Source: Guillardia theta CCMP2712
Taxonomy: Eukaryota > Protista > Cryptophyta
DNA: 64,000 nucleotides
Assembly (NCBI RefSeq): GCF_000315625.1
Contig: NW_005434564.1
Span: forward strand, 163,823-227,822
Direction of reading: 5' to 3'
Shown here piece by piece: positions 2,641 to 62,726 of this stretch; position 1 is the stretch's first letter; the number at the start of each line of letters is the position of its first letter. A program made the position numbers and the translations under genes. The notes under the pieces are model-generated. The model saw only the letters and a list, made by a program, of their open reading frames with translations. It searched no databases and had not been told where the DNA came from.

Positions 2641-2899
2641 TGTTCTACTTGAATTACAAAGAACACCGTAGCCAGCAACGAAGCTAAGATGGCACATGAT
2701 GTACAAACCGTTGAACCATCATGATCACATGTACGGTACTCAATATCGGACCCTCGGAGTCTGCCAGTTGCTAAACTTGCTTCAGAGTAACCGTGAACCG
2801 ATGTCCACACAGACAGAGCGGTATCAAAGTTAAGTTAAAAAGCAGTACGAGGACAATCAGGAGAGTATCCATTTGCAAGTTGTGTTGCTGAATCTTGCC
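2641..2899 (+). repeat. Dispersed repeat family B, 5' part, heavily interrupted by micro-insertions
   Basis: Colinear by eye with 43698-43908 (aattacaaagaacac...catgtac...ttgctaaactt...gtccacac...gtatccatttg...gttgctgaatcttgc). Confidence 0.85.
2826..2867 (-). repeat. Short 3' fragment of repeat family A nested inside family B
   Basis: Reverse complement reads actctcctgattgtcctcgtactgctttttaacttaacttt, matching 51334-51372. Flanked by GTATC at 2821-2825 and 2865-2869. Confidence 0.85.
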
Positions 2900-3428
2900 A
2901 ATCATGCGTCGAGGCAAAGCCAATGATTGATTGAACGAGTGCCATGCTGGTAAGTCTACCTCAGGAGGAAAACCGTTCAGTCACCGATCATGGAGTCCTC
3001 ACTCAGCGGCCATGAACACTGACCGTGATGATTCGCATCGCATGTTATGATCGGACCTTCCAGGACCGCCTATCAGTGCAGCGCAGCGCACTGGCCTGCG
3101 CCAGTCAAGTTCACTGGCAACTTGCCCCGACGGTGGCGGGCCGCCCTACAGTACGGTCCGACGGTCGGACGCAAGCATCGGAAGAGCCTTCTCATTCAGT
3201 CGAATGCTACAGAAGACAAATGAGGGGTATGAGAAGAATGAGTGGTATGAGATGATGAAAGAACATAATCTTGACTTGCTTGAAACCAAGAGTTGAAATT
3301 CGTTTACAAATCGTTCGCATTTGAGAGTGCAGCGGATCAAGAATGCAGCAAACTTCGATCTGAAAAGATTTGTATTACAGACAAGAATGCGATTCTTCCT
3401 GCTTCATTGAAGCGTTAACATTCGCGAC

Positions 3429-5126: not shown

Positions 5127-5570
5127 GCGCGATACTGATACTATGATACTAGCCGGCATGACGGCGCGGCCCTCCGACTCGGGTCACGGGTGGCAAGTTT
5201 GCGCAAAGGTAAGTCGGAAGGTGAAGTAGTATCATGATCGGATGACTCTGTGAGACACCAGTAAGTTTGGGGAGCTGAGCCGTACTGGCACCGTGCCGGG
5301 CAGCCGCCGCCAGTCACTGAGTGAGCAGTCACTGACTTTCGCCGGCCAAATAGTACGACGGGCCGGGTACCGGCCACCGGCACGCCGTATACGATAGTAG
5401 GATTGGGTTTAGTTCTCGCCGCTGTCGAGTCTCTTGTCGCTGGCAGTATGGCCTGGCGAGTCACTCCGCGACTCAGGGGCCCGGCCAGGGTCAACTGCCT
5501 CCTCTACTCTGACTCTCCTGATTGTACGGTACGGTCCTCGTACTGATTTTTAACTTAACTTTGAGTAAAA
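5127..5570 (+). repeat. Dispersed repeat family A, strongly expanded copy
   Basis: Shares ordered blocks with 50645-50921 and 51085-51379: ggcatg..gcgcgg, gtaagt..gaag, taagtttgggg, gttctcgc, cagggtcaa, ctcctgattgt, cctcgtactgatttttaacttaactttgagtaaa. Confidence 0.8.
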
Positions 5571-6092: not shown

Positions 6093-7622
6093 ATGAACTT
6101 GTTCTTCCTTCTCACATGCCTCTGTTTCATCATCATTGGAGCTCGGAGTGAACTGGCCCCTGTGGCCCCTCTGCTCCCCCTCCAACTCTCCACCACAGCT
6201 ACAACAAACTTGCTGAGAAGTGACTCGTGCGGGTTTGTTCTAGATTGTGGGGCAGCCTTGAAGTCTCTCAGCTGGGTTAGAGCAGAGGGACGTTGCCAGC
6301 TGTCGTGCCTGTGGAGTAGGAGAGCACCGAGGGGCGGAGCGAGACTGCAGCGACAAGTCGTGAGAGGAGGAGGAGCGACATCGAGCATGTCACAGGGGGG
6401 GAGCAGCAACGTCATCGACGGGAGGAGGATCTCGCAGCTGGTGCAGGAGGAGGTGAAGCTCCACGTGGAACAGCTCAAGAGCGAGCACGGGGTGGAACCG
6501 GGACTTGCGGTGCTGATCATCGGGGACAGGACAGATAGCCAGGTGTACGTGAAGCACAAGGTACTAGCATGCGAGAAGTGCGGTATCAGGTCCGTCAAGG
6601 TGGAGCTGGGCAAGGAGACGACGCAGGAGGAGGCGGAGAGGGTCGTGCGGGAGCTCAACGGCGACTCGTCGATCCACGGCATCCTGGTCCAGCTCCCGAT
6701 TCCAGAGCACCTCGACGAGAAGAAGCTGCTGGCTGAGATCTCCTTTGAGAAGGACGTCGACGGGTTTCACCCTACCAACATCGGGCTCCTCGCCATGCGC
6801 GATCGCAAGGCCCTTGCGCAGCCATGCACTCCCTCGGGTGTAATGGAGATCCTGAGAAGGTCCTNNNNNNNNNNNNNNNNNNNNNNNNNNNNNNNNNNNN
6901 NNNNNNNNNNNNNNNNNNNNNNNNNNNNNNNNNNNNNNNNNNNNNNNNNNNNNNNNNNNNNNNNAAGCGGGGGAATTCGGGGTTTTTTTTTTTGGGGGGA
7001 GAGGAGGAAAAAAAACCACGGGGTTTGGGGAACAAAAAGTTTTTTAACCAGAGAAAAAGGGGGTTTACCGCCCCCAAAAGGGGGGGGGGGGCAAAAGAGA
7101 ACCCCCCAAAAGAGGAGAAATTTTGGGGGGGAAATAAAGGGGTTTTGGTAAAACCGGGGGACGGGGGGGCCGCTCCAGTTTAGAAGGCCCTTGGAGGAAA
7201 AAAAAGGGGGGGGGAAAATTTCCTGAGGAAAAGGGGGGGGAGGGTACACCAACAAAAATGGGGTTCCTGCCCTGGGGGAGTGAAAAGCCGTTGGGGGGAA
7301 CAAAACCCCCCGGGGGGAAAAAAGGAAAATCAAAAGGGGGCTTTGGGCCAGCCCCCCCCCCCCCCCCCCCCCCCTTTCCTTCCTCCTTCCTCGCAGTCTC
7401 CTTTCTCGTAGCAGTTACTCTTTCCCTTTGCTCTCCTCCTGCTTGACCGCCGATCCATTTTTCACTGTCATGTTTGCTCTTGTCCTGCTGTAGCTTGTTC
7501 TCCTCCTTATTTCTACCTGCTCTTCCTCTTCTTCCTCTTCTTCCTCTTCCTCTTCCTCTTCCTCTTCCTCTTCCTCTTCCTCTTCCTCTTTTTCTTCCTC
7601 TTCCTCTTCCTCTTCCTCCTCC

Positions 7623-11698: not shown

Positions 11699-12924
11699 GG
11701 CAGAGTGGGAGGCGGGAGGGAGGAGTGGAGTGAAGTGTTTTTTTCAGTCGAGTGACGAGGGAAGGGGAGGAGAGGCAAGAGGAAGCAAACAAGAGTGATG
11801 AAGCAGAGAGGATATTGGGAGGGAGGTGTTAGGGTTGAGAGAGGATGGAGGGCGGAGAAGCAGGCGCACAATGAGCAGGGATAGAGAAAGTGAGCGCAGG
11901 AGGGAGGACCGGTCCTTTCCTCCGCACAAGGGGAAGGTCCCTGGGCCTGGTGGGTAGGGTAGTTTATTTCCAAATAATTTTATAGATTACTTATTTTCCA
12001 AATTATAACGGTACAAGTATATGACTGAAATATTTTATATCAGCATTCGGGGGATGGAAATTGTTCACCTATAAGAGGGGGTGGGTGTGGGTGGGAGAAC
12101 CGAAAATACTAATACGGTGGGGTACATTGATTGGTTTCTGGGTGGGTGGGGTAGGGGACGACGAGATAATCTGAAAGGGGTGGGGTGAAATCTAGGGGTT
12201 CATTGCTGACGTCTGAGCGGATCCACGTCGATATGTCTAGATCGAGGGGGTGGGGGTAGTAAAAATAGGGGTTCTTGACATAGCAACCAAGGGGTAGTAG
12301 TGGAACGATGGCTGTCGGGTAGGGGGTTGTTGAAAAAAGGCTACACTAGTCTGTTCCTGGGGTAGGGTACCAAGTCTCAATTTTTTTTTGATCTCTTGAG
12401 AACGAAAAGCATACTTTTCGAGACACTCGGGACAGTTCCCGACAGACATATTATCAAGTACCCCTGCCAAGTACTCTTTGTTTAGCCCACCGGTACTGGA
12501 CTACAACTTCACCGCGAGTTTACTGCTGAGTGAGTAAAAAAGTAAAGATTTAAATAATAATACTAATAATATCGCCTGCCGTGACTGCCAGACTCTCGTC
12601 CCAGCTGGCCTCCGAGTCAGCAGGTGCCCCCACGCCCGGCCCGGGTAAGCCGGGCCGGGCCGGGCCCCGGCGATTCCGAGTCGAGTCCCAGCGTCACACA
12701 CCGTCTGGCACTGTGACCAGCCTGAGAGGCCGGGCTCCGACCGTCGGACTTTGTCGGAACCCGCCCGGCCGGCGCATCCGCCCGGCCGGCGGCGGCTGCA
12801 GATCGGACGGAACGTTCCGACGGTCGGCTGGCCTGAGTGCCCACCGGGCCCGGCCCCTGTACATTGCCACGGCCGGGCGCCGCGGCCCGGTACATTGCCA
12901 CGGCCGGGCGGCTACCGGGCTCGG

Positions 12925-12967
12925 ACTCCTGCCATGATTACTGATTTTTCACTTAACTTTGAGTAAA
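12925..12967 (+). repeat. 3' end fragment of repeat family A
   Basis: tactgatttttcacttaactttgagtaaa matches the family A terminus. Confidence 0.75.
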
Positions 12968-15857: not shown

Positions 15858-18800
15858 ATGGCGGCAGAAGAGCCTGAGGTGAGGAGGAGGAGGAGGAGGG
15901 AGGAGGAGGAGGAGGAGATGATGATGATGATGACGACGACGACGATGAGGATGAGGACGAGGATGAGGAGGACGAGGATGAGGATGAAGATTGTTGAGGA
16001 CGAGGTGGGGGGAGAAAGAGAAGGAGAATACATAGCTGGGTGAAAAGATTGTAGCAAGGAGGCGGAGGCATGATGATGTTGTGAAGATGATGATGACAAA
16101 CGATTGGACATCGTCAACATCATGTGTTAGGATGTCAGAACATCACCTGGAGAATAATTAAGATTTAGCTTCATGAGATTGCAGCATGACCGAGCTGTCT
16201 CCAAGACATTTGTCGAGTGTTGTGGACTGATTCCGTTCATGTTCGGCGACGGAGGGGGGTTGGGGGACGGAGGGAGTGAGGGAAGTTGTTGCACCGCCCT
16301 ATCACCTTGACTGCGTTGCTGGCTCAGGTCCAAGCCGAAACGGTTGAGCCGGTGCGGAAAGATCTGCCCAAGTTCAACATCCCTGTCCTCAAGGTTTGAT
16401 GCTGAATCACTTCGACCTGCCTTTACCTGACGGCTCCTCCTCCTCCTCCTCCTCCTCCTCCTCCTCCTCCTCCTCCTCCTCCTCCTCCTCCTCCTCCTCC
16501 TCCTCCTCCTCCTCCTCCTCCTCCTCCTCCTCCTCCTCCTCCTCCTCCTCCTCCAGATCATCATTGAAGCGCAAGGACTGCACGGGCTGCGATATGGAGA
16601 TTATCAACGATACAGGTGAATTGTGCTGTGAGGAAGAGGATGGAAAAGGATCGAATCACTTGAGATGTGTTTGTGCTGTACATGAACATTAACGTGGTCT
16701 TGTGTGGTATCTTGTGTCTGACGTGCAACGAGGAATGGAGAGAGCGTGATGGTGGTGTGGAAGAGGAGGAGCTGACGACTATCGTAGACAATACTGCACG
16801 CGAAAGATGCGCAGGCTGCGAAAAGCTCTCAACTTTCTGCATTGGGAGCAGGGGAAGGGGAAAAGCAAATTTATCCAGAAGAAGATCGATATAGATATGA
16901 TCAACGATGCCAGATATCTTTTCATTGTGCTCAACAAGGTGAGATGTGTCCTCCTCTTCCTGCCCTCCCTCCTCCTCCTCTGCCCTCTTGTCGCTTGCTT
17001 GACCCACATGTTCGACCTCTCCCTCCTCTGTTTGTGCTCCCGACGTTCCTCCTCTTCTCCTCGCTCATCGTCTCGCTCACTCCTCACCTCTCCCTCGCAG
17101 GCAGAGCGAGCATGGTCGTACGCGATGCAGCTGCGCGAGGCGCCGGGGGGGCCGGGACGGGAAGTTCATCACGTCAGCCGGTTGCTGGCCAAGGCAGTGA
17201 AGCACTCCGCCTACCTGGAGACTCTCTGCCGGGAGTTTGCGGACGATCGTTCGTGCCTGGAGGCAGAGGTGAGGGAGGAGGAGGACGGGAAGTGGGGATA
17301 GACGAGGGGAGGGGAGGAAGGGGGACAGGAAAGTAGGGGGCAAGGGAGAGGAAAAACGTGGAAAGAGAGGAGGGGAGGAGGGAAGAAGAGGAGAAGCATG
17401 TAGACACTTGAGTTCTCTCCTCAACTCTGTCGCAGGCGTACGCCGCATGGCTAGCAGGGAGCATGCTCCTGGAGAGGGAGGAGTGGGAGCAGGCGCTCGT
17501 GAAGCTGAACCGCTCCCGGACCGTCTACGACGAGCTGAGCCACTCAGCGGAGGGGGTCGAGCAAGCGATGTACAGGAAGAGGTGAGAGCAGCTGGAGTCG
17601 TGCTGGGGCCCTGCTGACTTCCTGCTGAGGGTGGAGGAGATCGAGCCTTCGGTCCGTTACTGTCGTTACAACGTGTCAAGAGAGGTAGGAGGCACATCGT
17701 TTCCTCCTCCTCCTTCTCTTCCTCCTCCTCCTCCTCCTCCTCCTCCTTCTCTTCCTCCTTCTCTTCCTCCTCCTCTTTCTCTCCTCTGTGGGGCTGCGAT
17801 TACACATAAGGAGACATGAAGACATCAAGTCTGTGCTGAGACTTTTCCTCGTTGAAGCATGAGCCTCTTTCTCTTCCTCCTCCCCGTCCCCTTCCCTCCT
17901 TCCTTGCTGCTCCTCACCGTCCCTGCAGGGGGGGTCGAGCAACCTGGAGGAGCAGAGTCAAGTGCTGATGGAGATCGGGAAGTCGGGAGGCGATATGCTC
18001 AAGGGTAAGCTGGAGAAGAGCCTGGCGGAGGCGAGGAAGAAGCAAGCGGCGGCAGCTCATATCCTGCACTGGATGGGGAAGGAGATTTCTGTGGACAACC
18101 CAGCTATCCACCAGCACATCCTCTCAGCAGAAGGGTCGCAGTTCGAGCTGGAGCAGGCGGAGAGTACAGAAGGAAAGCTGGCGATCTACGACAAGATCTT
18201 CATGGCTCTCGAGGACGCGAAGCAGCTCATCAGGGATGATATCTCCAACAACCTCAAGAGGGGGAAGGACTGCGACGACGCCCTCACCGCCTCCCTCCAG
18301 CAGGTCAGGAACATGGTCCAGAGCATCGTCCTCCTCCGGACGAGGGAGCGAGATCTCCTGCTGGTCTCCCAGCTGCAGGAGAAGCTCCAGACCGAGTTCT
18401 TCGCAAACATCGCCGGGGGGAAGGAGGTGCCCAAGAAAGCGACCCGCCCCGAGGACCTCGTGAAGCTCTTCGAAGTCTTGATGCAGGTGGGGAAAACCTT
18501 CCCTCTCTNNNNNNNNNNNNNNNNNNNNNNNNNNNNNNNNNNNNNNNNNNNNNNNNNNNNNNNNNNNNNNNNNNNNNNNNNNNNNNNNNNNNNNNNNNNN
18601 NNNNNNNNTTACCCTCTCCTCCCTCCCTCCCCTCCCTCCCTCCCTCCCTCCCTCCCTCCCTCCCTCCCTCCCTCCCCGAGGCTCTCCCTCCCTCTCTTCT
18701 CTCTCCTCTCCCTCCTCTCTCCTCTCCTCTCCTTCCCTGCCCCCAACTTGTTTCCTCCACCGCTTTGCTCTGTCTCCCCTTACATTCTTTCATTTTGCTC

Positions 18801-42824: not shown

Positions 42825-43697
42825 GGCGGGCAAGAATCCTGTCATATTCCCACCCTAAAAATATTTTTGGAGTATAAACAAGTATGAGCAATACAACCAC
42901 GGTATAAGGGAGGAATAGTATCACTACCCCCTTGAAAAACATTAAATAAGGGGGTACTTGCTCTGAGTGTCAAGGCTTCTGTTATACATTCTTATACATT
43001 CTTTACACAGTTTCTGGGGCAGCGATTTTCTTCTCCTAATGATCTGGCTAATCTGAATGAATAGAACGAAGATGTCTTCAATATGTGAGTATTGTACAAC
43101 CCCGAGGCGCACTTGTGAAAAAATATTGAGTAATATTTTATTACGGGTCAGGTATCGGGTATGAGGGGTATGAATCAAAACGGCTCATTCCCCGGTCACG
43201 GCGCACAGTGACAGGCTGCCGGCTCCGTCGGATCGCACTCAGCGGCCATGATGAATCGGCGGCCGGGCCGGCGCCGCCGGGGGCCCGGGCCCGGCGGGGG
43301 AGCCTGCCAGTGGGCCACCGGCGTGGCCCAGGAGGGCCCCGCCGCGCCGGGGAGTGGCCCGAGGGGGCTATCTCCGAGCCCGGACCGAGGTGGCGCGCCG
43401 CGCCCTCAGCCTGGCAGAGGATGAGGCTCTCTCCGGGCCGGGGCCCCTCCAGAGGCTCTAGCCGCAGCCTCAGCGAGTCACGGAGGTCCCAAGGATACGT
43501 GACTAGCCTCGGATGATAACCGTCGAGCCTCAGCCTGGCCGCCGGGAGCCGCCGCCCGCCGCCCCCCCGCGACCGGGCCGGGGCCCCCGCCCGGTCAACC
43601 TGCGGTCCGAGTCACTGTGCCGCGGTCGCCGATACGCCGGATGAAGAACGTGTTACGCACGAGACAATGTTGCATGGTCCGCCAATTACACCAGTCA

Positions 43698-44026
43698 TGT
43701 TCTAATTACAAAGAACACAGGAACGAAGTTAAGATGCAGATTACAAACCATCACATGTACTCAGTATCTGTTGCTAAACTTCAGAGCAACCGACGTCCAC
43801 ACACCTCAGCTCGAATTGGTGCTTCTCAGAACCGTCGTGATGGTATCAGACGTACTCCGAGTCAGGCTCCCCAGGCAGGCGGTATCCATTTGTGTTGCTG
43901 AATCTTGCTGAAACTGACATCATTTGAAACAGACACTTCTGGTACAATTCCTTAATTTAGAACGGTGTTTCTGCCAAAACATTCAGAACTGTGTCTGATG
44001 ATTTCAAATCTTAGGGGCACAATGAT
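43698..44026 (+). repeat. Dispersed repeat family B, most intact copy
   Basis: First part aligns to 2641-2899, second part to 4650-4826. Confidence 0.85.
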
Positions 44027-47100: not shown

Positions 47101-49600
47101 CACTCGCCTTCTCCCCCACCATCTCCCTGGGCATGTCGTTGAGCCGCTCCATCTCACCCTGTCCTCTCTCCAAGTTGTCGCTGCAGGACTTGCTCCTTCG
47201 TGTGCCCATCACTTCTGCTCTCGCGGATTCGAGCTCAGCCAGGTCACTCATTGAAGAAAAGTTTGAGTCCAGGTCATCTTTCGAGGTCGACCTTGACATC
47301 GTTCCTAGAGCGTCTGAGGGGGAGGGAAGGTTCGAAGGGCCGGCACTCGCGATCTCTGCTCCGGCAAGCATCTTCTCTTGCTCCACAGGACTCTCCAACT
47401 TGACATCCACAAGCTCCTCGGCCACTACATGCTCATCCTCCATGGCTGCGGGGTCCAGACCTGCAGGGTCCTCAATCTCCAGGCCGGCCAAGTCAAGCAG
47501 CTCCTCAGGAGTGTCGGTATCATCAGGGTCAAGGATGTCGTCGTCGTCGCCATCGCACTCGACATCCTGCTCGATCTCCTCGTCACTCACGTCCGAGACC
47601 GTGTCACGTTGCGTCCGGGAGAGGTTAGCGGAGCGATTGACTCGTGGAAGGGTCGAGGAGCTCCACTCGTTGGCGATCGCATTCATGTCTAGGTCGTCTT
47701 CATTCCTGGCATCGACAGGATCCAGCATCGCCATCTCGTTCTCGAGCCCGTCAGGATCCACTTCGCCCTTGGGAGCTGCTGACGTCGCTTTCACCGCAGT
47801 CATCTCAAGCTCCGTGTCGTCGATCTCATCAAAACCGTTGCCATTGTCGTACTTGCCATCCGGTGAGCCCTTGTACCCTGACACGATGTGGCGAGCAAGG
47901 TCAAACAACTTCTCGCACGGAGCATCAGGAAAATGCAAGCTGTAAACGAGTCTGTCCAGTGTTGGACGAGTTTTGAGCCAGCGCGCCACATTCAGCAGCA
48001 TCACTTCGGCGAGCACATCAGGGCCCGGCGGAAGAAACGGCTCTCGAGAGTTGCTTGCGATGCTGCGGGAGAGCGCAACAGAGACCCCAGCATTCTTCAA
48101 CATGGGCCGGACACCGCTGACAGCCGGGGGAAGACCTCTTCGCGGCAAGGCCTCTGCATGCACGTCGTCGAGATACTTGATAGTATCAGGATTGTTCTCT
48201 GCATTCTCTGGAAAACAAAGGTCGTAGTTGAAGGTGTCGTCTACGACAGTCTTGTTCAGCAACTGTTTCGCCTCGGAAAATTCCCCCAGCACCTCAGATG
48301 TTAGCACCGTCCTTTGTAAACGATTGAGAACCATGTACGAACTCTTGAAAAGTTCTTGGGAGTCTGAATATCTACCTATCACGACAAACATAGCATCAAT
48401 ACCGCCGGCCCTCTTTAAGTTGTCCATATATCTCTGTAGCATATTCTCAGTAATATCTTCTGAGACATGCCTCCTGACTATACATAACAAAAATTCTGTT
48501 GCAACCGCAACAAAACGCTTGTTGCCCACACGGGCATAGATAGCATTGACAACTGATTGCATTACTTGCAGAGTTCCTACGAAAGGAAGGGTTCCATCTG
48601 AGGACTTGGCCATGCAGATCATCAGTTGTACTCCCATGATCGCAGCTTCCATGTTTTCGGCACCGAAATACTTCGTCTCTTTGTCACTCAGTACTTGAAC
48701 CACAAGTTGCACTCCCCCAGTCTTGGCCACTGCAACTGAATTTTGAGGGCTGGTGGTCAAGGAACAGAGGCATGTAAACCCCGCTTTCTGGAAAGAAATG
48801 CGCTTGATGTGCGAAGCCAGGAGAGAGACTATGGGAGGAAGACCCCCTTCCAGTCTGATGATGATGGCCACCCCTTTCAAACACTTGCAGAGGGTCGTGA
48901 GCGTCTCAAGGACTGCAAGCGAGACGGACTCATCCGAGGATCTAGATCTGATCAGCCCTAGGATTGCCTTGATCATCGGGGCCGCTGTCTTGCTTCCAGC
49001 CGCGATGAACTTGGGCGTCTTGGCATAATGTGACGTGCGTCGAAGGGCCTTGACAATATCATCGGAGCTCGCATCCGAATCCACGAGGCAGGCTGCTTCT
49101 GACATCAGCTCTGATGAGTTTGTCTTTCGTGTTGGCACTACAACCCTCACTACGAGGGGGGCTCCACTGTTCACAGCGGCCCCTGAAGAAGAATTGCCTA
49201 TGAAACAAGTCAAGCATCAGGTCAGATCTTTGCTGTTGCAGACAAGTCCGATTGAAAAGTACCTGTGTTGAATTGTCTGCCTGACATGGTCAGTCAAGCA
49301 AAGCAGATGCTTCAGACTTCTGGTCTCCGCCAAGTGCACAACGCAAGCACATGAAATAATCGGTTCATGCTCTGCTCACACAACCATTAGCACTGTGGGT
49401 AAGCAGACATGAACTTCTTCACGAAAGCAGAACTTACGTTCAAGAATTCTGCCTCGATACTTCAAGTATACTTGATTGAATTGAAGTCACGTTGACAGAT
49501 CGAAGTAAGAACGTTCATTCCCACTGCAGTGCAAAGGATATATCAATCCTACTGCATATACACTTTTGCAGTAGGACGAAGGGATTGAGAGTTGCTTGTC
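44181..49600 (-). CDS. Cytosolic carboxypeptidase (M14D, CCP1/AGTPBP1-AGBL1 type; tubulin deglutamylase) with ARM-like N-terminus
   Basis: [97 protein letters not shown]. The 5' start is uncertain. Confidence 0.93.
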
Positions 49601-50644
49601 GTCAAAGGAAAAAGGGGCGCGCAGACAAGAGGTGCTTAGCAAAACTTTGATGAATGAGGAAATAATTTCGATCACGAGGAGGAGGAGGACAGTGAGTTGT
49701 GTGATCAGGTGTTGAAAACATCAGGCTGGAACGACTCAGAAGCAACCAGACGACAAAGATGAAATCTCAGCAGGGGTGGGCTCCAGATTGGGGAAGGGTG
49801 CAGAGCAAAGTAGGTAGGAATGAATGGTCAGGAGGGGACAGAACAAGGATGGAAAGGATGCAGGGAGGAAAGGGTGGTGGGGATAATAGAAGGAAACACG
49901 ACAAGGGGACGAAAGGAGAGGGAGTTGGACAGCAATGGTGAACATGAAGGGAAGGTTGAAGAGGTAAGAACGGGATGAAGGAGGAGGAGGAGGAGGAGGA
50001 GAGGAGGAGGAGGAGAGAGTGAGGGCGAGTGTGGAGGGACATTCGCCTGCCTGTGGCCGCTATCTTGAAGTTAGCATTGGCGGGTCGGCTGCAGGTGGTC
50101 GTTTGAGTGGGGTGGTAACGGAAATAGGGGTACAATCGGTGATGGGTGGGGTATGGGGTGGTGATGTAAGAGGAAGGAAAGTCATATTGGTGGGTATTTA
50201 TATAGTCTTAGTGATCTATATTTGATGGTAGGGTAGTAAAATGTATGGTAGGGTATAGCATGTGAGAGGTGGTGGTATTACCAGTATCTATTGTTGTGGA
50301 ATACATAGGGTGGGTGTGGTGAGAAAATCCCTCATCCCCCCTCATGCCAAGCCTTCATCACTGAGCACTGCTCAGACCGTACTGAGCATCATCCTCACCC
50401 TGAGCATCATCACTGTCGGTCAGTGATCATCAGCAGCATCAGATCATGGGCCCTAGTCACGTCACTGATGAGTCCCCCAGATCATCCGGCATGATCGGTG
50501 ATCCCGGAGCCTCGGAGTCCCCAGCATCATCCGATCATGAGGGCCGGCGCAGCCAACTCGGATCATCCGCCTAAGTTCCGAGTTGACCTTGCCCGGACTC
50601 CGTTATGACCGGAGCTGGGTGCATCCCGCCGGTATGCGTCTCAT

Positions 50645-50921
50645 TCCTTCGGCGACGGCCACAGCGCGGCGATATCGCTGGCATGGCGCGGGGGAATTGT
50701 CCTGCCAGTGCGCACCGGCAGTCAGTAAGTGAAGGCATCAGTTAAGTTTGGGGGACAGCAGTTGGCCGGGCAGGAATACTGATAGGTTTCAAGTTCTCGC
50801 TGTCTTTTCTCGGAAGTTCCCGCCGTTTGGCCAGTGCGACAGTTGTCAGGGTCAATCCTCCTCTACTCTCCTGATGATTGTCCTCGTACTGATTTTTAAC
50901 TTGACTTAACTTTGAGTAAAG
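50645..50921 (+). repeat. Repeat family A, copy 1 of a tandem pair
   Basis: Aligns with 51085-51379 (gaattgtcc, aagtgaagg.atcagttaagtttgggggacagcagt, gttctcgctgtcttttctc, tgtcagggtc, attgtcctcgtactgattttt, acttaactttgagtaaag). Confidence 0.9.
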
Positions 50922-51084
50922 AGCCAGGAAGATTTTCAAAGTCACTAAGTTCGTCAGCCGCGCCCGGAGCCGCCGCGGCTGGGCCGCCCGGCGCCCCCCC
51001 GGGCCGCGGTCATCCGGGAGAGTCCGGCGCGGGTGCTTCACTGACTCCCGTCACCCGTGCCACGTGACCGTGCCGCTGGCGGCC

Positions 51085-51379
51085 CGGCGGCGGCCGCCGC
51101 GTGACATCGCTGGCCGGGCCCCGGCCCGGCCCCGCCCGGGCATGGGCCGGGGGAACTTAGGCTTCCGAATTGTCCAGCGCGCAGTTAAGTGAAGGTATCA
51201 GTTAAGTTTGGGGGACAGCAGTCGGCAGGGCATTGGGGTTGGTTCTCGCTGTCTTTTCTCTTCTCGCCGTTCAACGGTTTGGCCTGTGCGACGGAGTGTC
51301 AGGGTCCGACGGGCCAAGCCTCCTCGACTCAGGCTCCTGATTGTCCTCGTACTGATTTTTGACTTAACTTTGAGTAAAG
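51085..51379 (+). repeat. Repeat family A, copy 2 of a tandem pair
   Basis: See 50645-50921. Confidence 0.9.
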
Positions 51380-53701
51380 TACTCGGCGGTATGCGCCTGC
51401 CACCCTCAGCACGCGCGGCAGTGCGCCGCGCCGACTCGGGGCGGCTCAGCGGCGGCTTGAAAGAAGTCTCAAAGTCGGCAGTGTGACTGGCGGTGACCGT
51501 CCGAGACGGTACGGTACGCCCCAGGCTGTGACCGACGGGGCCGGTTCACGGTTGGGCTCAGACTCAGGACTCACTGAGTTACGCCGTGCGGATCTCTTTT
51601 CAAGTTTTTTTTCGCCCCCGAGGAGTCGACGGACTGGTGACCCTGTGCTGCCAACCACCCCGGCGTGAAGGGTCGGCCAGGGGGGTAGTGAACCTGTCAC
51701 AGTGTCTTGGTGAACCCTGTGACGTATGGACAACTTGGCGACGGTTAAACTCTCTTCCGCAGATCGGTATCTCCACACATCTCAGCGCGATCTCGTCAGC
51801 CGCTGAGCACCACAAAGTATGCCGGCCCCTCTCCCCGTGCCCCTTCTCCCCCTGCTCCAATTTCGGCATTCATGTTGCCTTGCCCTCGCTCGAATACCCT
51901 GCCTGCCTTGCCCACTCCTTCACTTTCATTCCTTTTCTCGCATCGCTCGAACTACTGCCTTGGCAAATATTGACCCAACATGCACGTCCATGAATGCGCC
52001 ATCGACTATCAGGATGTTTCGATTTCTTCAGACGAGGTCCCCACTGAAGTTGAGTTTGACCTCACAAGTGAGGAGTATTCTTTCCTGACCCAAACTGGTG
52101 GAGTCTTTGGATGTGCTTCATGCGACTTCTGTGTGATGAACGGCAAAGACCATATTCGTTACAAGCAATTCGGGTGTCCTTGCAAATTGAAGCAGTTGAC
52201 AGCACTATCTCACTCCATCTCGCTGATATCTTCGAAGAAAACTCGACAGATTATTGGAGCCACGGGCTGTGTGCTTAATCTACAATCTGAATGAATACAT
52301 GAAATGTCCGATCAAAAGTTTGCCATTTTTTGATACATGGCGCTTCACAGAGAATTCAATCCTTCAGATTGTATACAAACTTGAAGTCTTTCAGGCCTCG
52401 AGATTCATGCCGGTGAAGTATTCGTCAGCTTCCTCAAGACGTGGTCACGCAGGATTCAAATTCTGACTCAATGTGTCGGAGCGGTATGCGGCCGCTCAGA
52501 TGACCAGCCGCTGAGCATCGTCCCGTTGTAGTATGGCCGTAGTACTGCCGTACTCCGAACTCGGTCCGGGAAGTCCGATCGGACGGGAAGTCCGACCGTA
52601 CCGTACCGTACGGTACGGTCACGGTCCGATCTCGGTTACTGTGACAGAGTGATGCTTTCAGGCAGGCTCAGAGCCTGCGTTGGAACTTTGAAACAGTGAG
52701 ACTCGGGCCCCGGGTCGGCCCCCGATCGGACCGCCCGGCCGGTCCGATCCCGGCGATCAGTCACAGGCTGGCAGCCCCGGGTAACGACCGTACGCCGGCG
52801 CCCGGCCGCAGGCCGCGGGTCACCGGTGGGCTGTCACCGATCGGCCGCCCCCGACTGCGGCCCCCGGGCGGCTGACTCGGAGCCTATCGTGTGAGCCCGC
52901 CTGGCAGTAGGGCCGACAGACCGTGAAGTGACGAGGCCCTGAGGGGTCAACGAGAGAGGATGATGACCTTACAAGGGGGGTGGGGGTCATAGAAGTAGAA
53001 CAGAAATGCGAGAGGTGGGGGTCATTTCTAGTAAAACGATGGGGTCCGAGTCCATGATGCCAGGGGGTTTGAAGAGTGAACCTTGAGGTGAAGGGTGGGG
53101 TCTGAGGAATCATGAAGTGATGGTGGAATAGTCCCTTGGGGGTAGGTAGGGGTGGTCTAAAGTGATAGGCTGAGACTGTACTTCTGGTAGTAATGCCATG
53201 AAGTGGAGGGGGTGGGGTCCGTTGAGGGAAGAAAAGTTTGAGTCGGTTTATGGGGTGGGTCCGTCTGCCGTCAGCGGCGCCGCGGCAGTCAAGCCGCTCT
53301 GGCATGATGGCGGGAAGCAGGAGGGGAAAGACGGGGGAGCAGGAGGGAGAGACGCGTCAGGACTGATGAGGAAGGAGCGGAGAGAAGACGAGAGCATGAG
53401 GGGATAGAGATGAGAGACAAACTAAAGTGGATATTCAGTGGGCAAGTACTGAATTGAATCGCTAACACTGTTTGATATCTCAAAGTTTTCCGACTTGTTC
53501 AGTTGAGTTCAAGAGGATAGGGGATTTTCGTGAGAGGCTAGCATTTCTCACACCGGCAAGGGTAAAGAAGAGACCACATCTTGATAACCGAACCTGCAAA
53601 GCTTTTGGCTGTCACTAACTGATAGATTTGAAACCTTCTTGCACTTTCTGTTGCAGGCAAAGGTGGTGCGAAATGATTGTAACATTTTTTTATCAGCGAT
53701 T

Positions 53702-54844
53702 ATGGTAGAACATTCAGACAGAAAGACTCTCCAGGACAAAAATTCCTTTGCAGAAACGGTTGGCAAAACCAAGCTTGAAAGCGTACAGAAGTTTCGCCGC
53801 AAGAAGATCCTAGACAAGAATCTGTTGAACGCTGTTTTATCCAACTTGGAAGTGAGGGCATCAGAAAATCTTTCAGAGAAGGGAACTGAGACAACGCATG
53901 GCAAGCCGCAACAATCCACTGATAAAGAGAGAGTCTCTTCGAAGTACACTCTCACGTATGCAAAATCGCTCTACGCCGTAGAAGAAATGAAGAATACCGT
54001 CGCAACGTCAAAAGAAAGAAAGCCTGCAGAAATGACGTTGAACGAAGGTGCCTTTGCAGACAGCATGCATCATTTTTGCGTTTTGAGGTGAAGATTCATT
54101 GATGGCATCCTCAGGTGTTTACCTAAAGAGCGAGCTTGATCTCAACAACATCGAAAGAGCTAAGTCATCTGTACTGAGTGAGCTCGCGACGTCAGGCGTT
54201 GAGCCGCCAGCTTCTCAGGTACGTCTCTGTTTGCCCAGAAGCCTCGCTGATCATTTGAATAAACTCTTCCCAAATCGTGTTCTTCCTGAAATACCACCAT
54301 GTATGTTGTCCGGACTGATGACAATTTCAGATTCGTCCACATCGTGCGTGTAGACAAATTTCAGATGACAAGAAATATGCGATGTTTTTACAAGAGTCAT
54401 GGGGGCAACCCAAACGAATCATTTATGGTATTCTTCTTTTCATTACACACCAGACCTGGAATGATTCAACTTCATTTGTAGCACCTTCCAGGAAAAGGCA
54501 AAGGAACAATCAAATCTGTTCAGCATCCGGTGCGGAATTGAATCTTGAGTCCTTCGATCAAACACTTCAAGACTGAATTTCCCTGACAGATGCACAAAGG
54601 GTTCAAACCAACTCTAGTCAGTTTAAGGCAGCGAGGAAATTCACTGGCGAGGTTCGAATCCCAAGCAAAATTTCTGTTTGATAGCTGCACCTTGCAGACC
54701 CGTGGATTTGGTGGAAAACAGTTCAGGCCTAGCACGAGCCGCAACAAGGACGAGGCCAACAGCCTTGAAGACCTCCACCATGCAGCCTCACTCCTCTTGC
54801 TGTCACGAGATAGGTGTCTCAATCAGCAGTCCGCTGCCAAGTAA
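53702..54844 (+). CDS. Multi-exon hypothetical protein
   Basis: Consecutive plus-strand ORFs (53639-54091, 54099-54353, 54299-54481, 54590-54844) joinable by short introns. No domain recognised. Confidence 0.4.
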
Positions 54845-55096
54845 GAAGTGTCACTTGCAATGTTGAGCGACCAACACGCTGACGGTCAACGTTTGTGCAG
54901 AAAAGGCAAACGAGCATGATGCAGTTCACCTAAATCATAAACAAGGTCAAGCTCGACGCAAGCAGGCGGAACCACTCCAACTATTAGTCCATCTTGGTGT
55001 GCAACTCATGAGATCAAAACAAAGCTGTTTATTCAGTACATCAAAATACAAGTACAAGCACACAGAAAAAGTCCCACTTGCTCGTATTAACCCCTC

Positions 55097-57193: not shown

Positions 57194-58384
57194 ATGCTGA
57201 GACCGGCCGACTACCTGCCATGGTCGCTGAGCGCGCTGGTGTTCGTCTGCCTCCTATGCTTCACCTTCCTCCACCATGACAGCCAGGCTCGCTTCCAGCG
57301 CCTCATGGAGGAGGCAACGGCCAAGTGCCTGCAAGCAAGAACAAGCGAGTACGAGCAGGTGGTGGGAGCATGGAGGCGAGCAGCGCAGAGAGTAGCGAGA
57401 GAGCAGGAGGCGACCCTAAATCAGAGCAAGGAACTGGTGAGAGATCTGATGAGTCTCAAGGAAGGGCGCCTGGTTCCATCCTCCTCGACCCCCCTACCTG
57501 CCGTGCCAAGCTCAGCAGCAGGTTTGTCAGCTGAGCGAGTGGAGACGTGCTTCCAGAAGGTTTGGTCGCAGATCGATCAGTTCGAGTCGATGATGAAGAT
57601 CGAGAGGAGGTTCGCTACCTTGTGGCTCGCAAAGCAGATCCTGCTGCGGGGGCTGCGGGGCGATTTCATCGAGGCAGGGGTCGCCAACGGAGGAGGCGCG
57701 TGCATGATCCAGTCGCTCTTAAGCTGCGTGGGAGACCGTCGGGACTTTTACCTGGCGGACAGCTGGCAGGGGCTGCCAACTCCCTCGAAGACGAGCTTCA
57801 GCAAGGAGCCTTCGCAGTTTCGAGGAGGAGAGTTCTACGTGCCCTTCGCTCGCTTCGTCAAGGAGTGGGAGGGGTGGGAGAGGAACTGGACGCGGGAGGG
57901 GTTCGAGTGGCCCAGGCTCAACGGCGGTACCGCCAAGGTGCTCAAGGGAGAGTTTCAAGCTACTCTGCCTCGGCTGCGCGACGAGAACGTGAGCTTGAGC
58001 TACGTCAAGTGCGACGGTGACATGTACTCGTCGACGTTCGAGTGCGTTCAGTTCTTGTATCCTAGGCTGGAGTGCGGGGGCTACATCTACTTCGATGACT
58101 ACCATGAGTTTGGGGAGTGTCAACGAGCCGTGAAGGACTACTTGACGCAGACAAACCAGCAGGACGTGGCGGAGGACATGTTCTCTGTGCGTCAAGGCTT
58201 CGGGCTCGGCGTGTACGACAGGACGCTGACAAAAGCCAAGTACGAGGCGGTGTTTTGGCGGAAGGAGTGCGAGCGCAAGGAAGCGGGTAGGAGGAGGGAA
58301 GGGAGGAGGAGGCAGGTGTCAGCGGAGGTGGGCGAGCGGTCGGGCAAAGAGAGACAGAGATCGAGTCGTGGACAAGTGCCATAG
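57194..58384 (+). CDS. TylF/MycF/NovP-family O-methyltransferase with N-terminal membrane anchor, intronless
   Basis: GDFIEAGVANGG, LADSWQGLP, VLKGEFQATLP, KCDGDMYSST, LYPRLECGGYIYFDDY, CQRAVKDY. Hydrophobic segment WSLSALVFVCLLCFTFL. Confidence 0.9.
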   Translation: MLRPADYLPWSLSALVFVCLLCFTFLHHDSQARFQRLMEEATAKCLQARTSEYEQVVGAWRRAAQRVAREQEATLNQSKELVRDLMSLKEGRLVPSSSTPLPAVPSSAAGLSAERVETCFQKVWSQIDQFESMMKIERRFATLWLAKQILLRGLRGDFIEAGVANGGGACMIQSLLSCVGDRRDFYLADSWQGLPTPSKTSFSKEPSQFRGGEFYVPFARFVKEWEGWERNWTREGFEWPRLNGGTAKVLKGEFQATLPRLRDENVSLSYVKCDGDMYSSTFECVQFLYPRLECGGYIYFDDYHEFGECQRAVKDYLTQTNQQDVAEDMFSVRQGFGLGVYDRTLTKAKYEAVFWRKECERKEAGRRREGRRRQVSAEVGERSGKERQRSSRGQVP

Positions 58385-58499
58385 ATCAGCACCGGGAGCT
58401 GGGAGCGTGAGAAGATAGTGAAGCAAGTGATGGGAGCTCAACGGCTGCAATGAAGTCAGAAGGTTTTTTGAGATGTTCGTTTTTAGTTGTCTTGGAACA

Positions 58500-60946: not shown

Positions 60947-62281
60947 ACAGCTACTTGCTCACGATAGAGTCGCCAACGTCCCAGTCCCTGCAGTTCCGAG
61001 GAATGATCGCAATGCAGCAGGAAGATAGCGAGACAACAGCAAATATCTCCTTATGTCCGTCTATTTCAATCACGAGGATCTTGTTGTCTCCTCCGACCCT
61101 CCCTTCTCACAAATTTGTAGCACCGCACCCCCGCAAGCTTGAACAAGACGTAAGAGTGTAAAACCCTTCTATTCACCCAGCACACACAGTCCTGTCTCTC
61201 CGGTATTCCTCACCTTCTGTACGCCGAGTCCCTACAAACAAGTTCTCTCTGCCCTAGTCTCGCCTCTCCTCCTCTCCTCTGCCGTCTCCTCTCCTCCTCC
61301 CTCCTTCCTCTCTCCCCTTCGCCTCATCCATTTCATTCCCCTCTACACCGACAACGGCCCCCACCCCCACCCTGCTAGAAACCCACGGTACCCCTGAATT
61401 CCCCCATACATGTACCCCTACATACTCTCAATACTACCCTACCTTACGGCACTGCGTCCCTCAGCACACCCGGAGAACCACCCCCACCCCCTCCCAGAAC
61501 ACCAGCCGCTTGATGCATGTGAAGACTCCAGGGCTCACTACTCCGATCGAGGGGGTGGGGTAGATCGAGTACCACCGGTGTCTGGTCTTCAGTAGTACAG
61601 TCATACCCCTTATTTACCCAGAAAAAATACCCCTCAGTGAGGTCACCCCTGTACCCCACCCCTGGTCTGAACAGCAACTTGAATCGGAGAGTTCTGTTTT
61701 AGGAATCTGCGAGAGAGCGTGCACCGCGTATGGCGGGAACTTGTTGACTGCGGTAGTGCATGCATGGGAGGAAGCGGGTACGACGAGCCAACATGATGGT
61801 TGAAGTCAGACAGGACGAGCAGATGATCAGCTTCGTCTCGTTCACAATGTGAAGGAGAACTGAGATGTTCAGCCAAATTTTGAGTGATTCCGAGGAGAAA
61901 ATCTCAAGTGGACAGAGAATCTGGAGCAAGAAAGCCGTGAAGGTAGTGGTAGGCATGAGGAGAAAATTGAACAAGCAGCTATCCAAGGATCTTTGCTTGT
62001 TCTCCCTCCAGCCGTCAGCTGCTCTTCCTCCTCATACTGACTCCCTCTCCCTCCAGGCTCCTCGTTCTCGTCCTCGTCCAATCCCCTCCACCTCTTCCTT
62101 CCTCATACACATGACTGAGTGATGGGACTGTGAGCTTGAGAGTGGAGTTTTTCCAGCACTCACTCTCACTAGTTTGAATCCCCAATGACCATCAGTAACA
62201 CGAGAACGATTCTTCCAAGTTTGCCTGCGAAGTCACTACGACTCGCGCCTAAGGCGCTTGCTTCCTTCACCTGCATTCACA

Positions 62282-62726
62282 GTGCTGATCTCTGGCACTC
62301 TTCCGCGACTCGATCTCTGTCTCTCTTTGCCCGACCGCTCGCCCACCTCCGCTGACACCTGCCTCCTCCTCCCTTCCCTCCTCCTACCCGCTTCCTTGCG
62401 CTCGCACTCCTTCCGCCAAAACACCGCCTCGTACTTGGCTTTTGTCAGCGTCCTGTCGTACACGCCGAGCCCGAAGCCTTGACGCACAGAGAACATGTCC
62501 TCCGCCACGTCCTGCTGGTTTGTCTGCGTCAAGTAGTCCTTCACGGCTCGTCGACACTCCCCAAACTCATGGTAGTCATCGAAGTAGATGTAGCCCCCGC
62601 ACTCCAGCCTAGAATACAAGAACTGAACGCACTCGAACGTCGACGAGTACATGTCACCGTCGCACTTGACGTAGCTCAAGCTCACGTTCTCGTCGCGCAG
62701 CCGAGGCAGAGTAGCTTGAAACTCTC
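62282..62726 (-). pseudogene. Inverted, 5'-truncated near-identical duplicate of the TylF gene 3' part
   Basis: Reverse complement matches 57948-58392 with few substitutions (YPRL to YSRL, ECQR to ECRR, stop TAG to GAG). Lacks the SAM-binding motif I. Confidence 0.9.

Follow-up and report, generated by a model that had tools for sequence, protein, structure and literature searches.

The Locus

The window analysed here is the whole stretch of 64,000 nucleotides (64 kb) from Guillardia theta CCMP2712. It includes islands that are poor in open reading frames (ORFs), and the genes flanking these islands include two armadillo-repeat genes and a TylF-like methyltransferase gene. A tandem pair of copies of a repeat, termed repeat A, sits in one of these ORF-poor intergenic islands. 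The assembly is interrupted by two runs of 100 N, at 6865-6964 and 18509-18608. An inverted duplication of 450 nt (98% identical) is found at 57948-58397 and 62277-62726; it covers the 3′ part of the TylF-like O-methyltransferase gene (ORF 57194-58384) and some downstream sequence. This pair was considered as a transposon and rejected, being a recent inverted segmental duplication of a gene fragment. Five copies of repeat A are found in the window:

50645-50921, plus strand: copy 1 of the tandem pair, aligning to copy 2, with the family 3′ end ...ACTTAACTTTGAGTAAA
51085-51379, plus strand: copy 2 (conserved core 51178-51379), aligning to copy 1
5198-5570, plus strand: copy 3, the longest, with a 5′ end, TTTGCGCAAAGGTAAGT, that matches the 3′ end in inverted orientation
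12925-12967, plus strand: short 3′ stub, with an exact 17-mer match at 12951-12967
2824-2863, minus strand: short and diverged 3′ stub, with a 95% match to 51334-51373

Copies 1 to 3 had been claimed in a first-pass annotation, at 50645-50921, 51085-51379, and 5127-5570. They are real and homologous, the third copy extending here over 5198-5570.

Differences Between Copies 1 and 2

The conserved cores of the tandem pair (50718-50921 and 51181-51379) were aligned formally, yielding 166 matches, 8 mismatches, and 12 gap events that hold 56 nt. The earlier statement that the copies differ mainly by insertions is borne out over the conserved core, with 12 small indels against 8 substitutions. None of the insertions is common to copies 1 and 2; they therefore arose independently after separation, as had been proposed, rather than by inheritance. 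Judged from their alignment, copies 1 and 2 are diverged copies that changed mainly through micro-insertions after they separated.

The first-pass annotation had described these insertions by a common grammar. One exact form of it stands, X-C-rc(X)-G-X, in which X is 3 nt and rc(X) its reverse complement, whereas several of the listed examples are not instances. This form, hereafter a full scar, and related insertions are found at the following positions, given without strand:

51269-51279: exact full scar GTT-C-AAC-G-GTT, 8 nt of which are missing in copy 1
51304-51314: near-full scar GTC-C-GAC-G-GGC, within a 9-nt insertion of copy 2
50812-50820: half scar GGAA-G-TTCC, a 5-nt GGAAG insertion in copy 1 made of the reverse complement of TTCC and a G
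50703-50720: short forms TGC-C-A-G-TGC and GCA-C-C-G-GCA, side by side in copy 1; ~6 nt absent in copy 2
50776-50784: short form ATA-C-T-G-ATA, within a 10-nt insertion of copy 1
51330-51333: CAGG, 4 nt inserted in copy 2 only and reverse-complementary to the CCTG 2 nt downstream
5506-5536: copy 3 insertions of 6 nt (ACT-C-T-G-ACT) and of two 5-nt units (GTA-CG-GTA-CG-GT)

The gtt-c-aac-g-gtt of the annotation is an exact 8-nt insertion relative to the gccgtttgg of copy 1. The gtc-c-gac-g-ggc at 51304-51314 does belong to a real 9-nt insertion, yet departs from the rule by one mismatch plus one base. Similarly, ct-c-ag-g-ct (51328-51335) marks a real 4-nt insertion but is no instance of the 3-nt rule; its CAGG (51330) is absent in 45998/47970 of the summed contig depth of other repeat A copies. 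In copy 3, actct-g-actct and both acggt units do represent genuine insertions, of the short kind (ACT-C-T-G-ACT and GTA-CG-GTA). Other readings in copy 1 did not survive the formal alignment: ggc-cg-ggc is gapless in it and thus a substitution, actt-g-actt is a tandem 5-mer duplication, and tt-c-aa-g-tt and agt-c-agt are 2-3-nt indels of no clear kind. The gap events between the two copies include two tandem duplications (TGA, TTAAC) and four events of 1-3 nt without clear structure, and the adjacent TGC-C-A-G-TGC and GCA-C-C-G-GCA sit just upstream of the aligned core. The tally in the repeat A pair is one exact and one near case, together with a half form and two short forms.

An Exact 8-bp Insertion Rule

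With X of 3 nt, X-C-rc(X)-G-X amounts to an 8-bp insertion. It occurs at 19 sites in the window, against 1.75 expected from 200 block-wise dinucleotide shuffles of the window, among which the maximum is 6 sites and none (0/200) reaches 19. The other 15 spacer pairs with the same length of X give 1-5 sites each. The rule is specific to 3 nt: in the window, no enrichment is found for X of 2 nt with C/G spacers (41 sites, inside the range of other spacers) or for X of 4 nt (1 site), and one-mismatch versions of the 3-nt rule display a small excess only. The looser grammar proposed at first, with a variable length of X, is not supported, its 2-nt examples being mostly like chance or other kinds of indels. 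The rule reads identically on both strands, the C following the first X on either of them. Within the islands and with GC-only X excluded, 16 sites are found against 0.2 expected, and none with G..C spacers. Besides the scar of copy 2, the exact sites are as follows:

51695-51705: exact full scar TGT-C-ACA-G-TGT, from the exact-rule scan
Further exact scars starting at 2706, 3156, 4924, 5138, 5312, 12739, 13050, 13334, 29877, and 43407
Further exact scars starting at 51080, 51798, 52506, 52934, 57045, and 57147
50502-50520: nested pair, GAG-C-CTC-G-GAG inside TCC-C-GGA-G-TCC, the outer scar appearing once the inner one (50507) is collapsed

At two sites, 51269 (versus copy 1) and 2706 (versus ~43700), paralogs are missing exactly the 8 nt and carry a single X. 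By a rough estimate, the nested pair at 50502-50520 has a chance expectation of ~0.006; one scar lies within another there, and the process therefore acts serially. As the annotation had anticipated, the same rule operates in unrelated sequences, namely repeat A, a second repeat (repeat B) at 2706, and unique DNA of the islands. A string of micro-insertions sets the two repeat B paralogs (2640-2790 and 43640-43790) apart, including the exact 8-nt scar at 2706, a 6-nt TCA-TGA-TCA without spacers, GGTAC, and a 14-nt complex block.

The sequence with scars is not an assembly artefact, because contigs from two studies match unique stretches with four scars without a single difference. One contig of run X1 matches 51351-54900, and a contig of run X2, from another study, matches 51903-53523, each with 0 differences. 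Contigs of four runs (X1 and X2-X4) display 0 differences in unique stretches, where neither insertion nor empty alleles, and hence no strain polymorphism, were seen.

The empty sites of the 19 exact scars were reconstructed, and C at -2 or G at +2 is found in 19/38 positions, against ~30% expected. There may be a weak symmetric target preference, C-n-XXX-n-G, at the scar sites. A perfect 27-nt palindrome, GACCGTACCGTAC-C-GTACGGTACGGTC, lies at 52594-52620 and is made of GTACC/GTACG units. It contains the sole instance of the rule with 4 nt, GTAC-C-GTAC-G-GTAC; GTAC being self-reverse-complementary, one-sided events there would give tandem arrays.

Shorter Forms and C/G-Centred Palindromes

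Within the islands, forms with C..G spacers were compared with control forms having G..C spacers, according to the number of bases of rc(X) that lie between them:

F3, X-C-rc(X)-G-X: C..G 16 (+1 nested), G..C 0
F2, two bases, prefix or suffix of rc(X): C..G 8, G..C 5
F1, one such base of rc(X): C..G 14, G..C 4
F0, X-CG-X: C..G 21, G..C 9

Under the prefix/suffix rule, the 8 cases of F2 compare with 1.8 expected, and 0/300 shuffles reach this number; the F0 and F1 counts are confounded by ordinary tandem duplications.

In the islands, odd palindromes centred on C or G are over-represented whatever the arm length between 2 and 7 nt, those centred on A or T being as frequent as expected. With a third-order expectation, the islands are enriched in every one of the 16 pentamer palindromes centred on C or G (898 against 578 expected). 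No excess is observed there for A/T-centred pentamers (355 against 352), or for C/G-centred ones in the rest of the window (1322 against 1351). The top over-represented 5-mers of the islands are such palindromes, e.g., TCCGA, ACCGT, and AGCCT. Recognisable scars make up ~2-3% of the island sequence and account for a minority of the ~320 excess palindromic pentamers; the bulk of the palindrome signal consists of events that are incomplete, decayed, or overwritten. No enrichment is found for pairs of C- and G-centred palindromes that adjoin without overlapping, the arrangement expected from an element without target duplication.

A 13-nt palindrome, TCCGAC-S-GTCGGA, is found twice in different surroundings (3157-3169 and 12736-12748). 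The heptamers GTC-S-GAC, AGT-S-ACT, and TCA-S-TGA are far commoner than their mirror forms (AGT 13 versus 4, TCA 11 versus 1), an asymmetry for which a symmetric insertion rule alone is insufficient.

Regional Clustering of the Scars

The scars cluster at ~2.0-3.2, 4.0-6.0, 12-14, 43-45, 50-54, 57-58, and 59-60 kb, in stretches without long ORFs. Between 16 and 18 of the 19 exact sites, together with the entire excess of C/G-centred palindromes, fall within ~13 kb of ORF-poor islands. The suggestion that the process depends on location rather than on one host sequence is in line with these data: the signature is clustered in islands and occurs in unrelated sequences, which supports a regional process. 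The islands were delimited after the signal was seen, and the contrast between islands and the rest is accordingly descriptive, and partly confounded by selection against indels in exons. The controls made within the islands (A/T centres, G..C spacers, and shuffles), on the other hand, are independent of how the islands were drawn.

The observed/expected ratio of CpG is ~0.9-1.0 in the islands (e.g., 51001-53000), against ~0.5-0.7 in most of the window. The scars, which add C and G beside inverted copies, may themselves raise the CpG content of the islands.

Proposed Origin: Hairpin-Capped Breaks

Five facts call for a mechanism: a direct duplication of 3 nt, a C that invariably follows the first X on each strand, an inverted X between the direct copies, one dominant product, and one-sided forms with arms longer than 3 nt. 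We propose that the scars stem from breaks having a 3-bp duplication and C-tipped hairpin ends, produced most simply by the excision of a cut-and-paste transposon, a reading to which we give about an even chance. A double-strand break would leave two ends that both carry X, the 3-bp duplication. Both ends would then be sealed as covalent hairpins, with one extra C at each tip. Opening of the hairpins off the tip would leave each end with a palindromic tail, reading ...X-C-rc(X) at the first end and, on the opposite strand, ...rc(X)-C-X at the second. These tails would anneal through three complementary bases (rc(X) with X, their sole complementarity), and the joint would be completed by flap trimming, fill-in, and ligation. 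The product X-C-rc(X)-G-X would be independent of the opening point, provided that it lies at least 3 nt from the hairpin tip. An opening closer to the tip, or the resection or loss of one side, would give rise to the short and half forms, i.e., X-C-(0-2 nt of rc(X))-G-X and the one-sided rc(flank)-G-flank. All five facts would be accounted for if the ends, both carrying X, were sealed as C-tipped hairpins.

The breaks could come from a cut-and-paste element having 3-bp target-site duplications and 5′-C...G-3′ termini, and excising through flank hairpins; the scars would result from its inserting into and excising from the islands many times. The model assumes that the first nick is placed one base inside the element. 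To our knowledge, a nick at this position has been documented for no transposon family. The duplicated X is exactly 3 nt, as in the excision footprint of an element with 3-bp target-site duplications. The spacers are always C then G, which would fit C...G termini of which at most one base per side is retained. The one-sided GGAA-G-TTCC, with its 4-nt arms, is an insertion in copy 1 and speaks for the hairpin reading. Against a transposon, the ~40 recognisable events in 13 kb would require very many excisions, and the recognisable scars cover little of the palindrome excess. Scans for terminal inverted repeats (TIRs) found no source element with 3-bp duplication and C...G inverted ends in the 64-kb window, and a Pfam search of ten window ORFs found no transposase. 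The TIR pairs with C...G or CAC/CAT ends, or with 3-bp duplications, proved to be of low complexity or due to chance, and CACTG/CAGTG, considered as residual element ends, are not above other C/G-centred palindromes. Within the window and the aligned runs, only empty and scarred paralogs are seen, and no filled site.

Comparison with Known Systems

For hAT, Mutator, Transib, and RAG, it is established that host nucleases open flank hairpins and that their joining leaves footprints (PMC5499845), and a hairpin model with a 1-nt offset has been put forward for Ac/Ds and Hermes (PMC2921059). The footprints of hAT elements (Ac/Ds, Tam3, and Hermes) resemble the present scars in keeping the target duplication on both sides with short palindromic additions adjoining, and they are explained by hairpin-capped donor ends, off-centre opening, and rejoining (PMC2921059, PMC5499845). 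They differ, however, by 8-bp duplications and by a nick placed one base into the flank, hence a typical base change or 1-bp loss, whereas in the present scars a constant C/G is flanked by a 3-bp duplication and a full inverted copy.

The CACTA/En-Spm/Tpn1 (CMC) elements come close in another respect, with 3-bp duplications, variable targets without a fixed sequence, and ends of which the first base is a C and the last a G, CACT(A/G) in CACTA elements (PMC4423477). In contrast, the footprints of plant CACTA elements are reported to measure 3-5 bp (bioRxiv 10.64898/2026.08.24.746626), against 8-bp palindromes here, and the window contains neither a CACTA-like element nor a transposase. No demonstration of flank hairpins was found for the CACTA superfamily in the literature consulted.

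The P nucleotides of V(D)J recombination (RAG hairpins, Artemis) and Transib display palindromic additions that also result from the off-centre opening of sealed hairpins. Their hairpins are nevertheless perfect, with no extra base at the tip, Transib generates 5-bp duplications, and the RAG/Transib joints are heterogeneous, whereas one 8-bp product dominates here. No description of an X-C-rc(X)-G-X signature was found in the literature, and the scars are best seen as hairpin-type break scars of a new form, unusually stereotyped and dense.

Alternative Explanations

The scars may instead originate without a transposon, in a locally targeted process of break and repair, by which a host or domesticated nuclease would time and again produce breaks with a 3-nt stagger in the islands, a C would be added, and the ends, hairpin-capped or folded back, would be rejoined with the same geometry. 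This possibility, although somewhat doubtful, stays a serious rival because the window holds neither element nor transposase, because plant CACTA footprints are reported to measure 3-5 bp, and because the nick inside the element is an assumption. It would agree with an outcome that is highly stereotyped, strongly regional, and very dense (~320 excess C/G-centred pentamer palindromes in 13 kb), as well as with the lack of a source element in 64 kb; X-CG-X could, moreover, be obtained through fill-in, addition of one C, and end bridging. The arms longer than 3 nt in one-sided forms, however, suit covalent hairpins better than the fold-back of a 3-nt overhang, and more new assumptions are needed than with known excision chemistry, since we are aware of no enzymatic machinery by which a single C would be added and the end then capped or folded back over precisely the 3 duplicated nt. 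A dedicated, chromatin-targeted "palindrome-writing", in which a host or domesticated hairpin-forming nuclease repeatedly breaks the islands and reseals them with a stereotyped 8-bp insertion, is unlikely. If it were true, micro-insertion, not substitution, would be the main mode of evolution of the intergenic DNA of this alga.

Inverted templated insertions are a known product of polymerase-theta-type or template-switch repair. Short inverted copies could hence arise with no specific nuclease, through snap-back or inter-strand template switching of a polymerase during replication or polymerase-theta-type end joining, and some indels do invert nearby bases outside the rule, e.g., the CAGG at 51330 versus the CCTG 2 nt downstream. 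Polymerase-theta templated insertions and quasi-palindrome template-switch mutations share with the scars the short inverted copies of adjacent sequence, but they have no fixed direct duplication, constant spacer bases, or 3-nt length rule. Template switching would not explain why the direct duplication is fixed at 3 nt, why C and then G are constant on both strands, or why G..C and other spacers are absent, which makes it improbable as the main origin of the scars. Finally, the palindromes could reflect no insertion process at all, being selected motifs (e.g., sites of dimeric factors), chance, or an alignment artefact. C/G-centred 7-bp palindromes are bound by dimeric factors, and the heptamers AGT-S-ACT, TCA-S-TGA, and GTC-S-GAC recur often. 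Yet the enrichment spans all 16 arm classes rather than a few motifs, the 11-mers are exact insertions relative to paralogs, an event is nested in another at 50502-50520, and chance is excluded by the shuffles and spacer controls. As far as the paralog comparisons can tell, a reading without insertion is already largely refuted, and we consider it highly improbable.

Should the scars be excision footprints, they would form an unusually clean and dense fossil record of the activity of one transposon family and of its break chemistry, with the 3-bp stagger, the one-base offset, the hairpin ends, and the microhomology joining readable from sequence alone, and they would demonstrate that intergenic DNA can be shaped to a measurable degree by footprints. 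Should no element account for them, the genome would harbor a localised mutational process of a previously undescribed kind. With either origin, the rule is precise enough to allow an exact census across the genome.

Nature of Repeat A

The last 17 nt of repeat A, ACTTAACTTTGAGTAAA, have four exact occurrences on the plus strand, at the ends of copies 1-3 and at 12951-12967. The 3′ end is identical in position in the five copies, which are ~40 to 370 nt long, and the 5′ extent is variable. Public contigs from two studies were aligned to 49200-54900, and their depth was summed per position. It amounts to 61 for single-copy DNA, against ~1e5 for the last ~45 nt of copy 2, and climbs from ~1.4e3 over the 5′ part of repeat A to ~1e5 over 51301-51491. 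Many contigs cease matching at 51378/51379, a sharp stop that marks the end of copy 2. Repeat A is a very abundant interspersed element whose 3′ end is fixed and whose 5′ extent varies. These two features make it a probable non-LTR retroposon tail, with a 5′-truncated pattern. No long copy is found within the 64-kb window. The 17-nt 3′ end was also encountered at 85 metagenome-contig loci, which are chance matches (0/85 with upstream repeat A sequence).

Alternatively, repeat A may be MITE-like, a reading that is kept because of the inverted 5′ end of copy 3 and the closing stem of copy 2. The inverted 17-mer at the 5′ end of copy 3 matches the 3′ end with 3 mismatches, its outer 9 nt being missing from copies 1 and 2. 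The core of copy 2 folds, and its closing stem joins the 5′ and 3′ parts (z -2.0). In the flanks, the best candidate for a target duplication is AG/AAG versus AGG. Repeat A has no Rfam match at the gathering score, and the search bearing on a tRNA-derived SINE found no tRNA anywhere in the window. Between copies 1 and 2, TTTTCAAAGTCACTAAGT at 50932-50950 is similar to the 5′ end of repeat A in inverted orientation (TTTACTCAAAGTTAAGT) and, from this similarity, may be a fragment of another copy.
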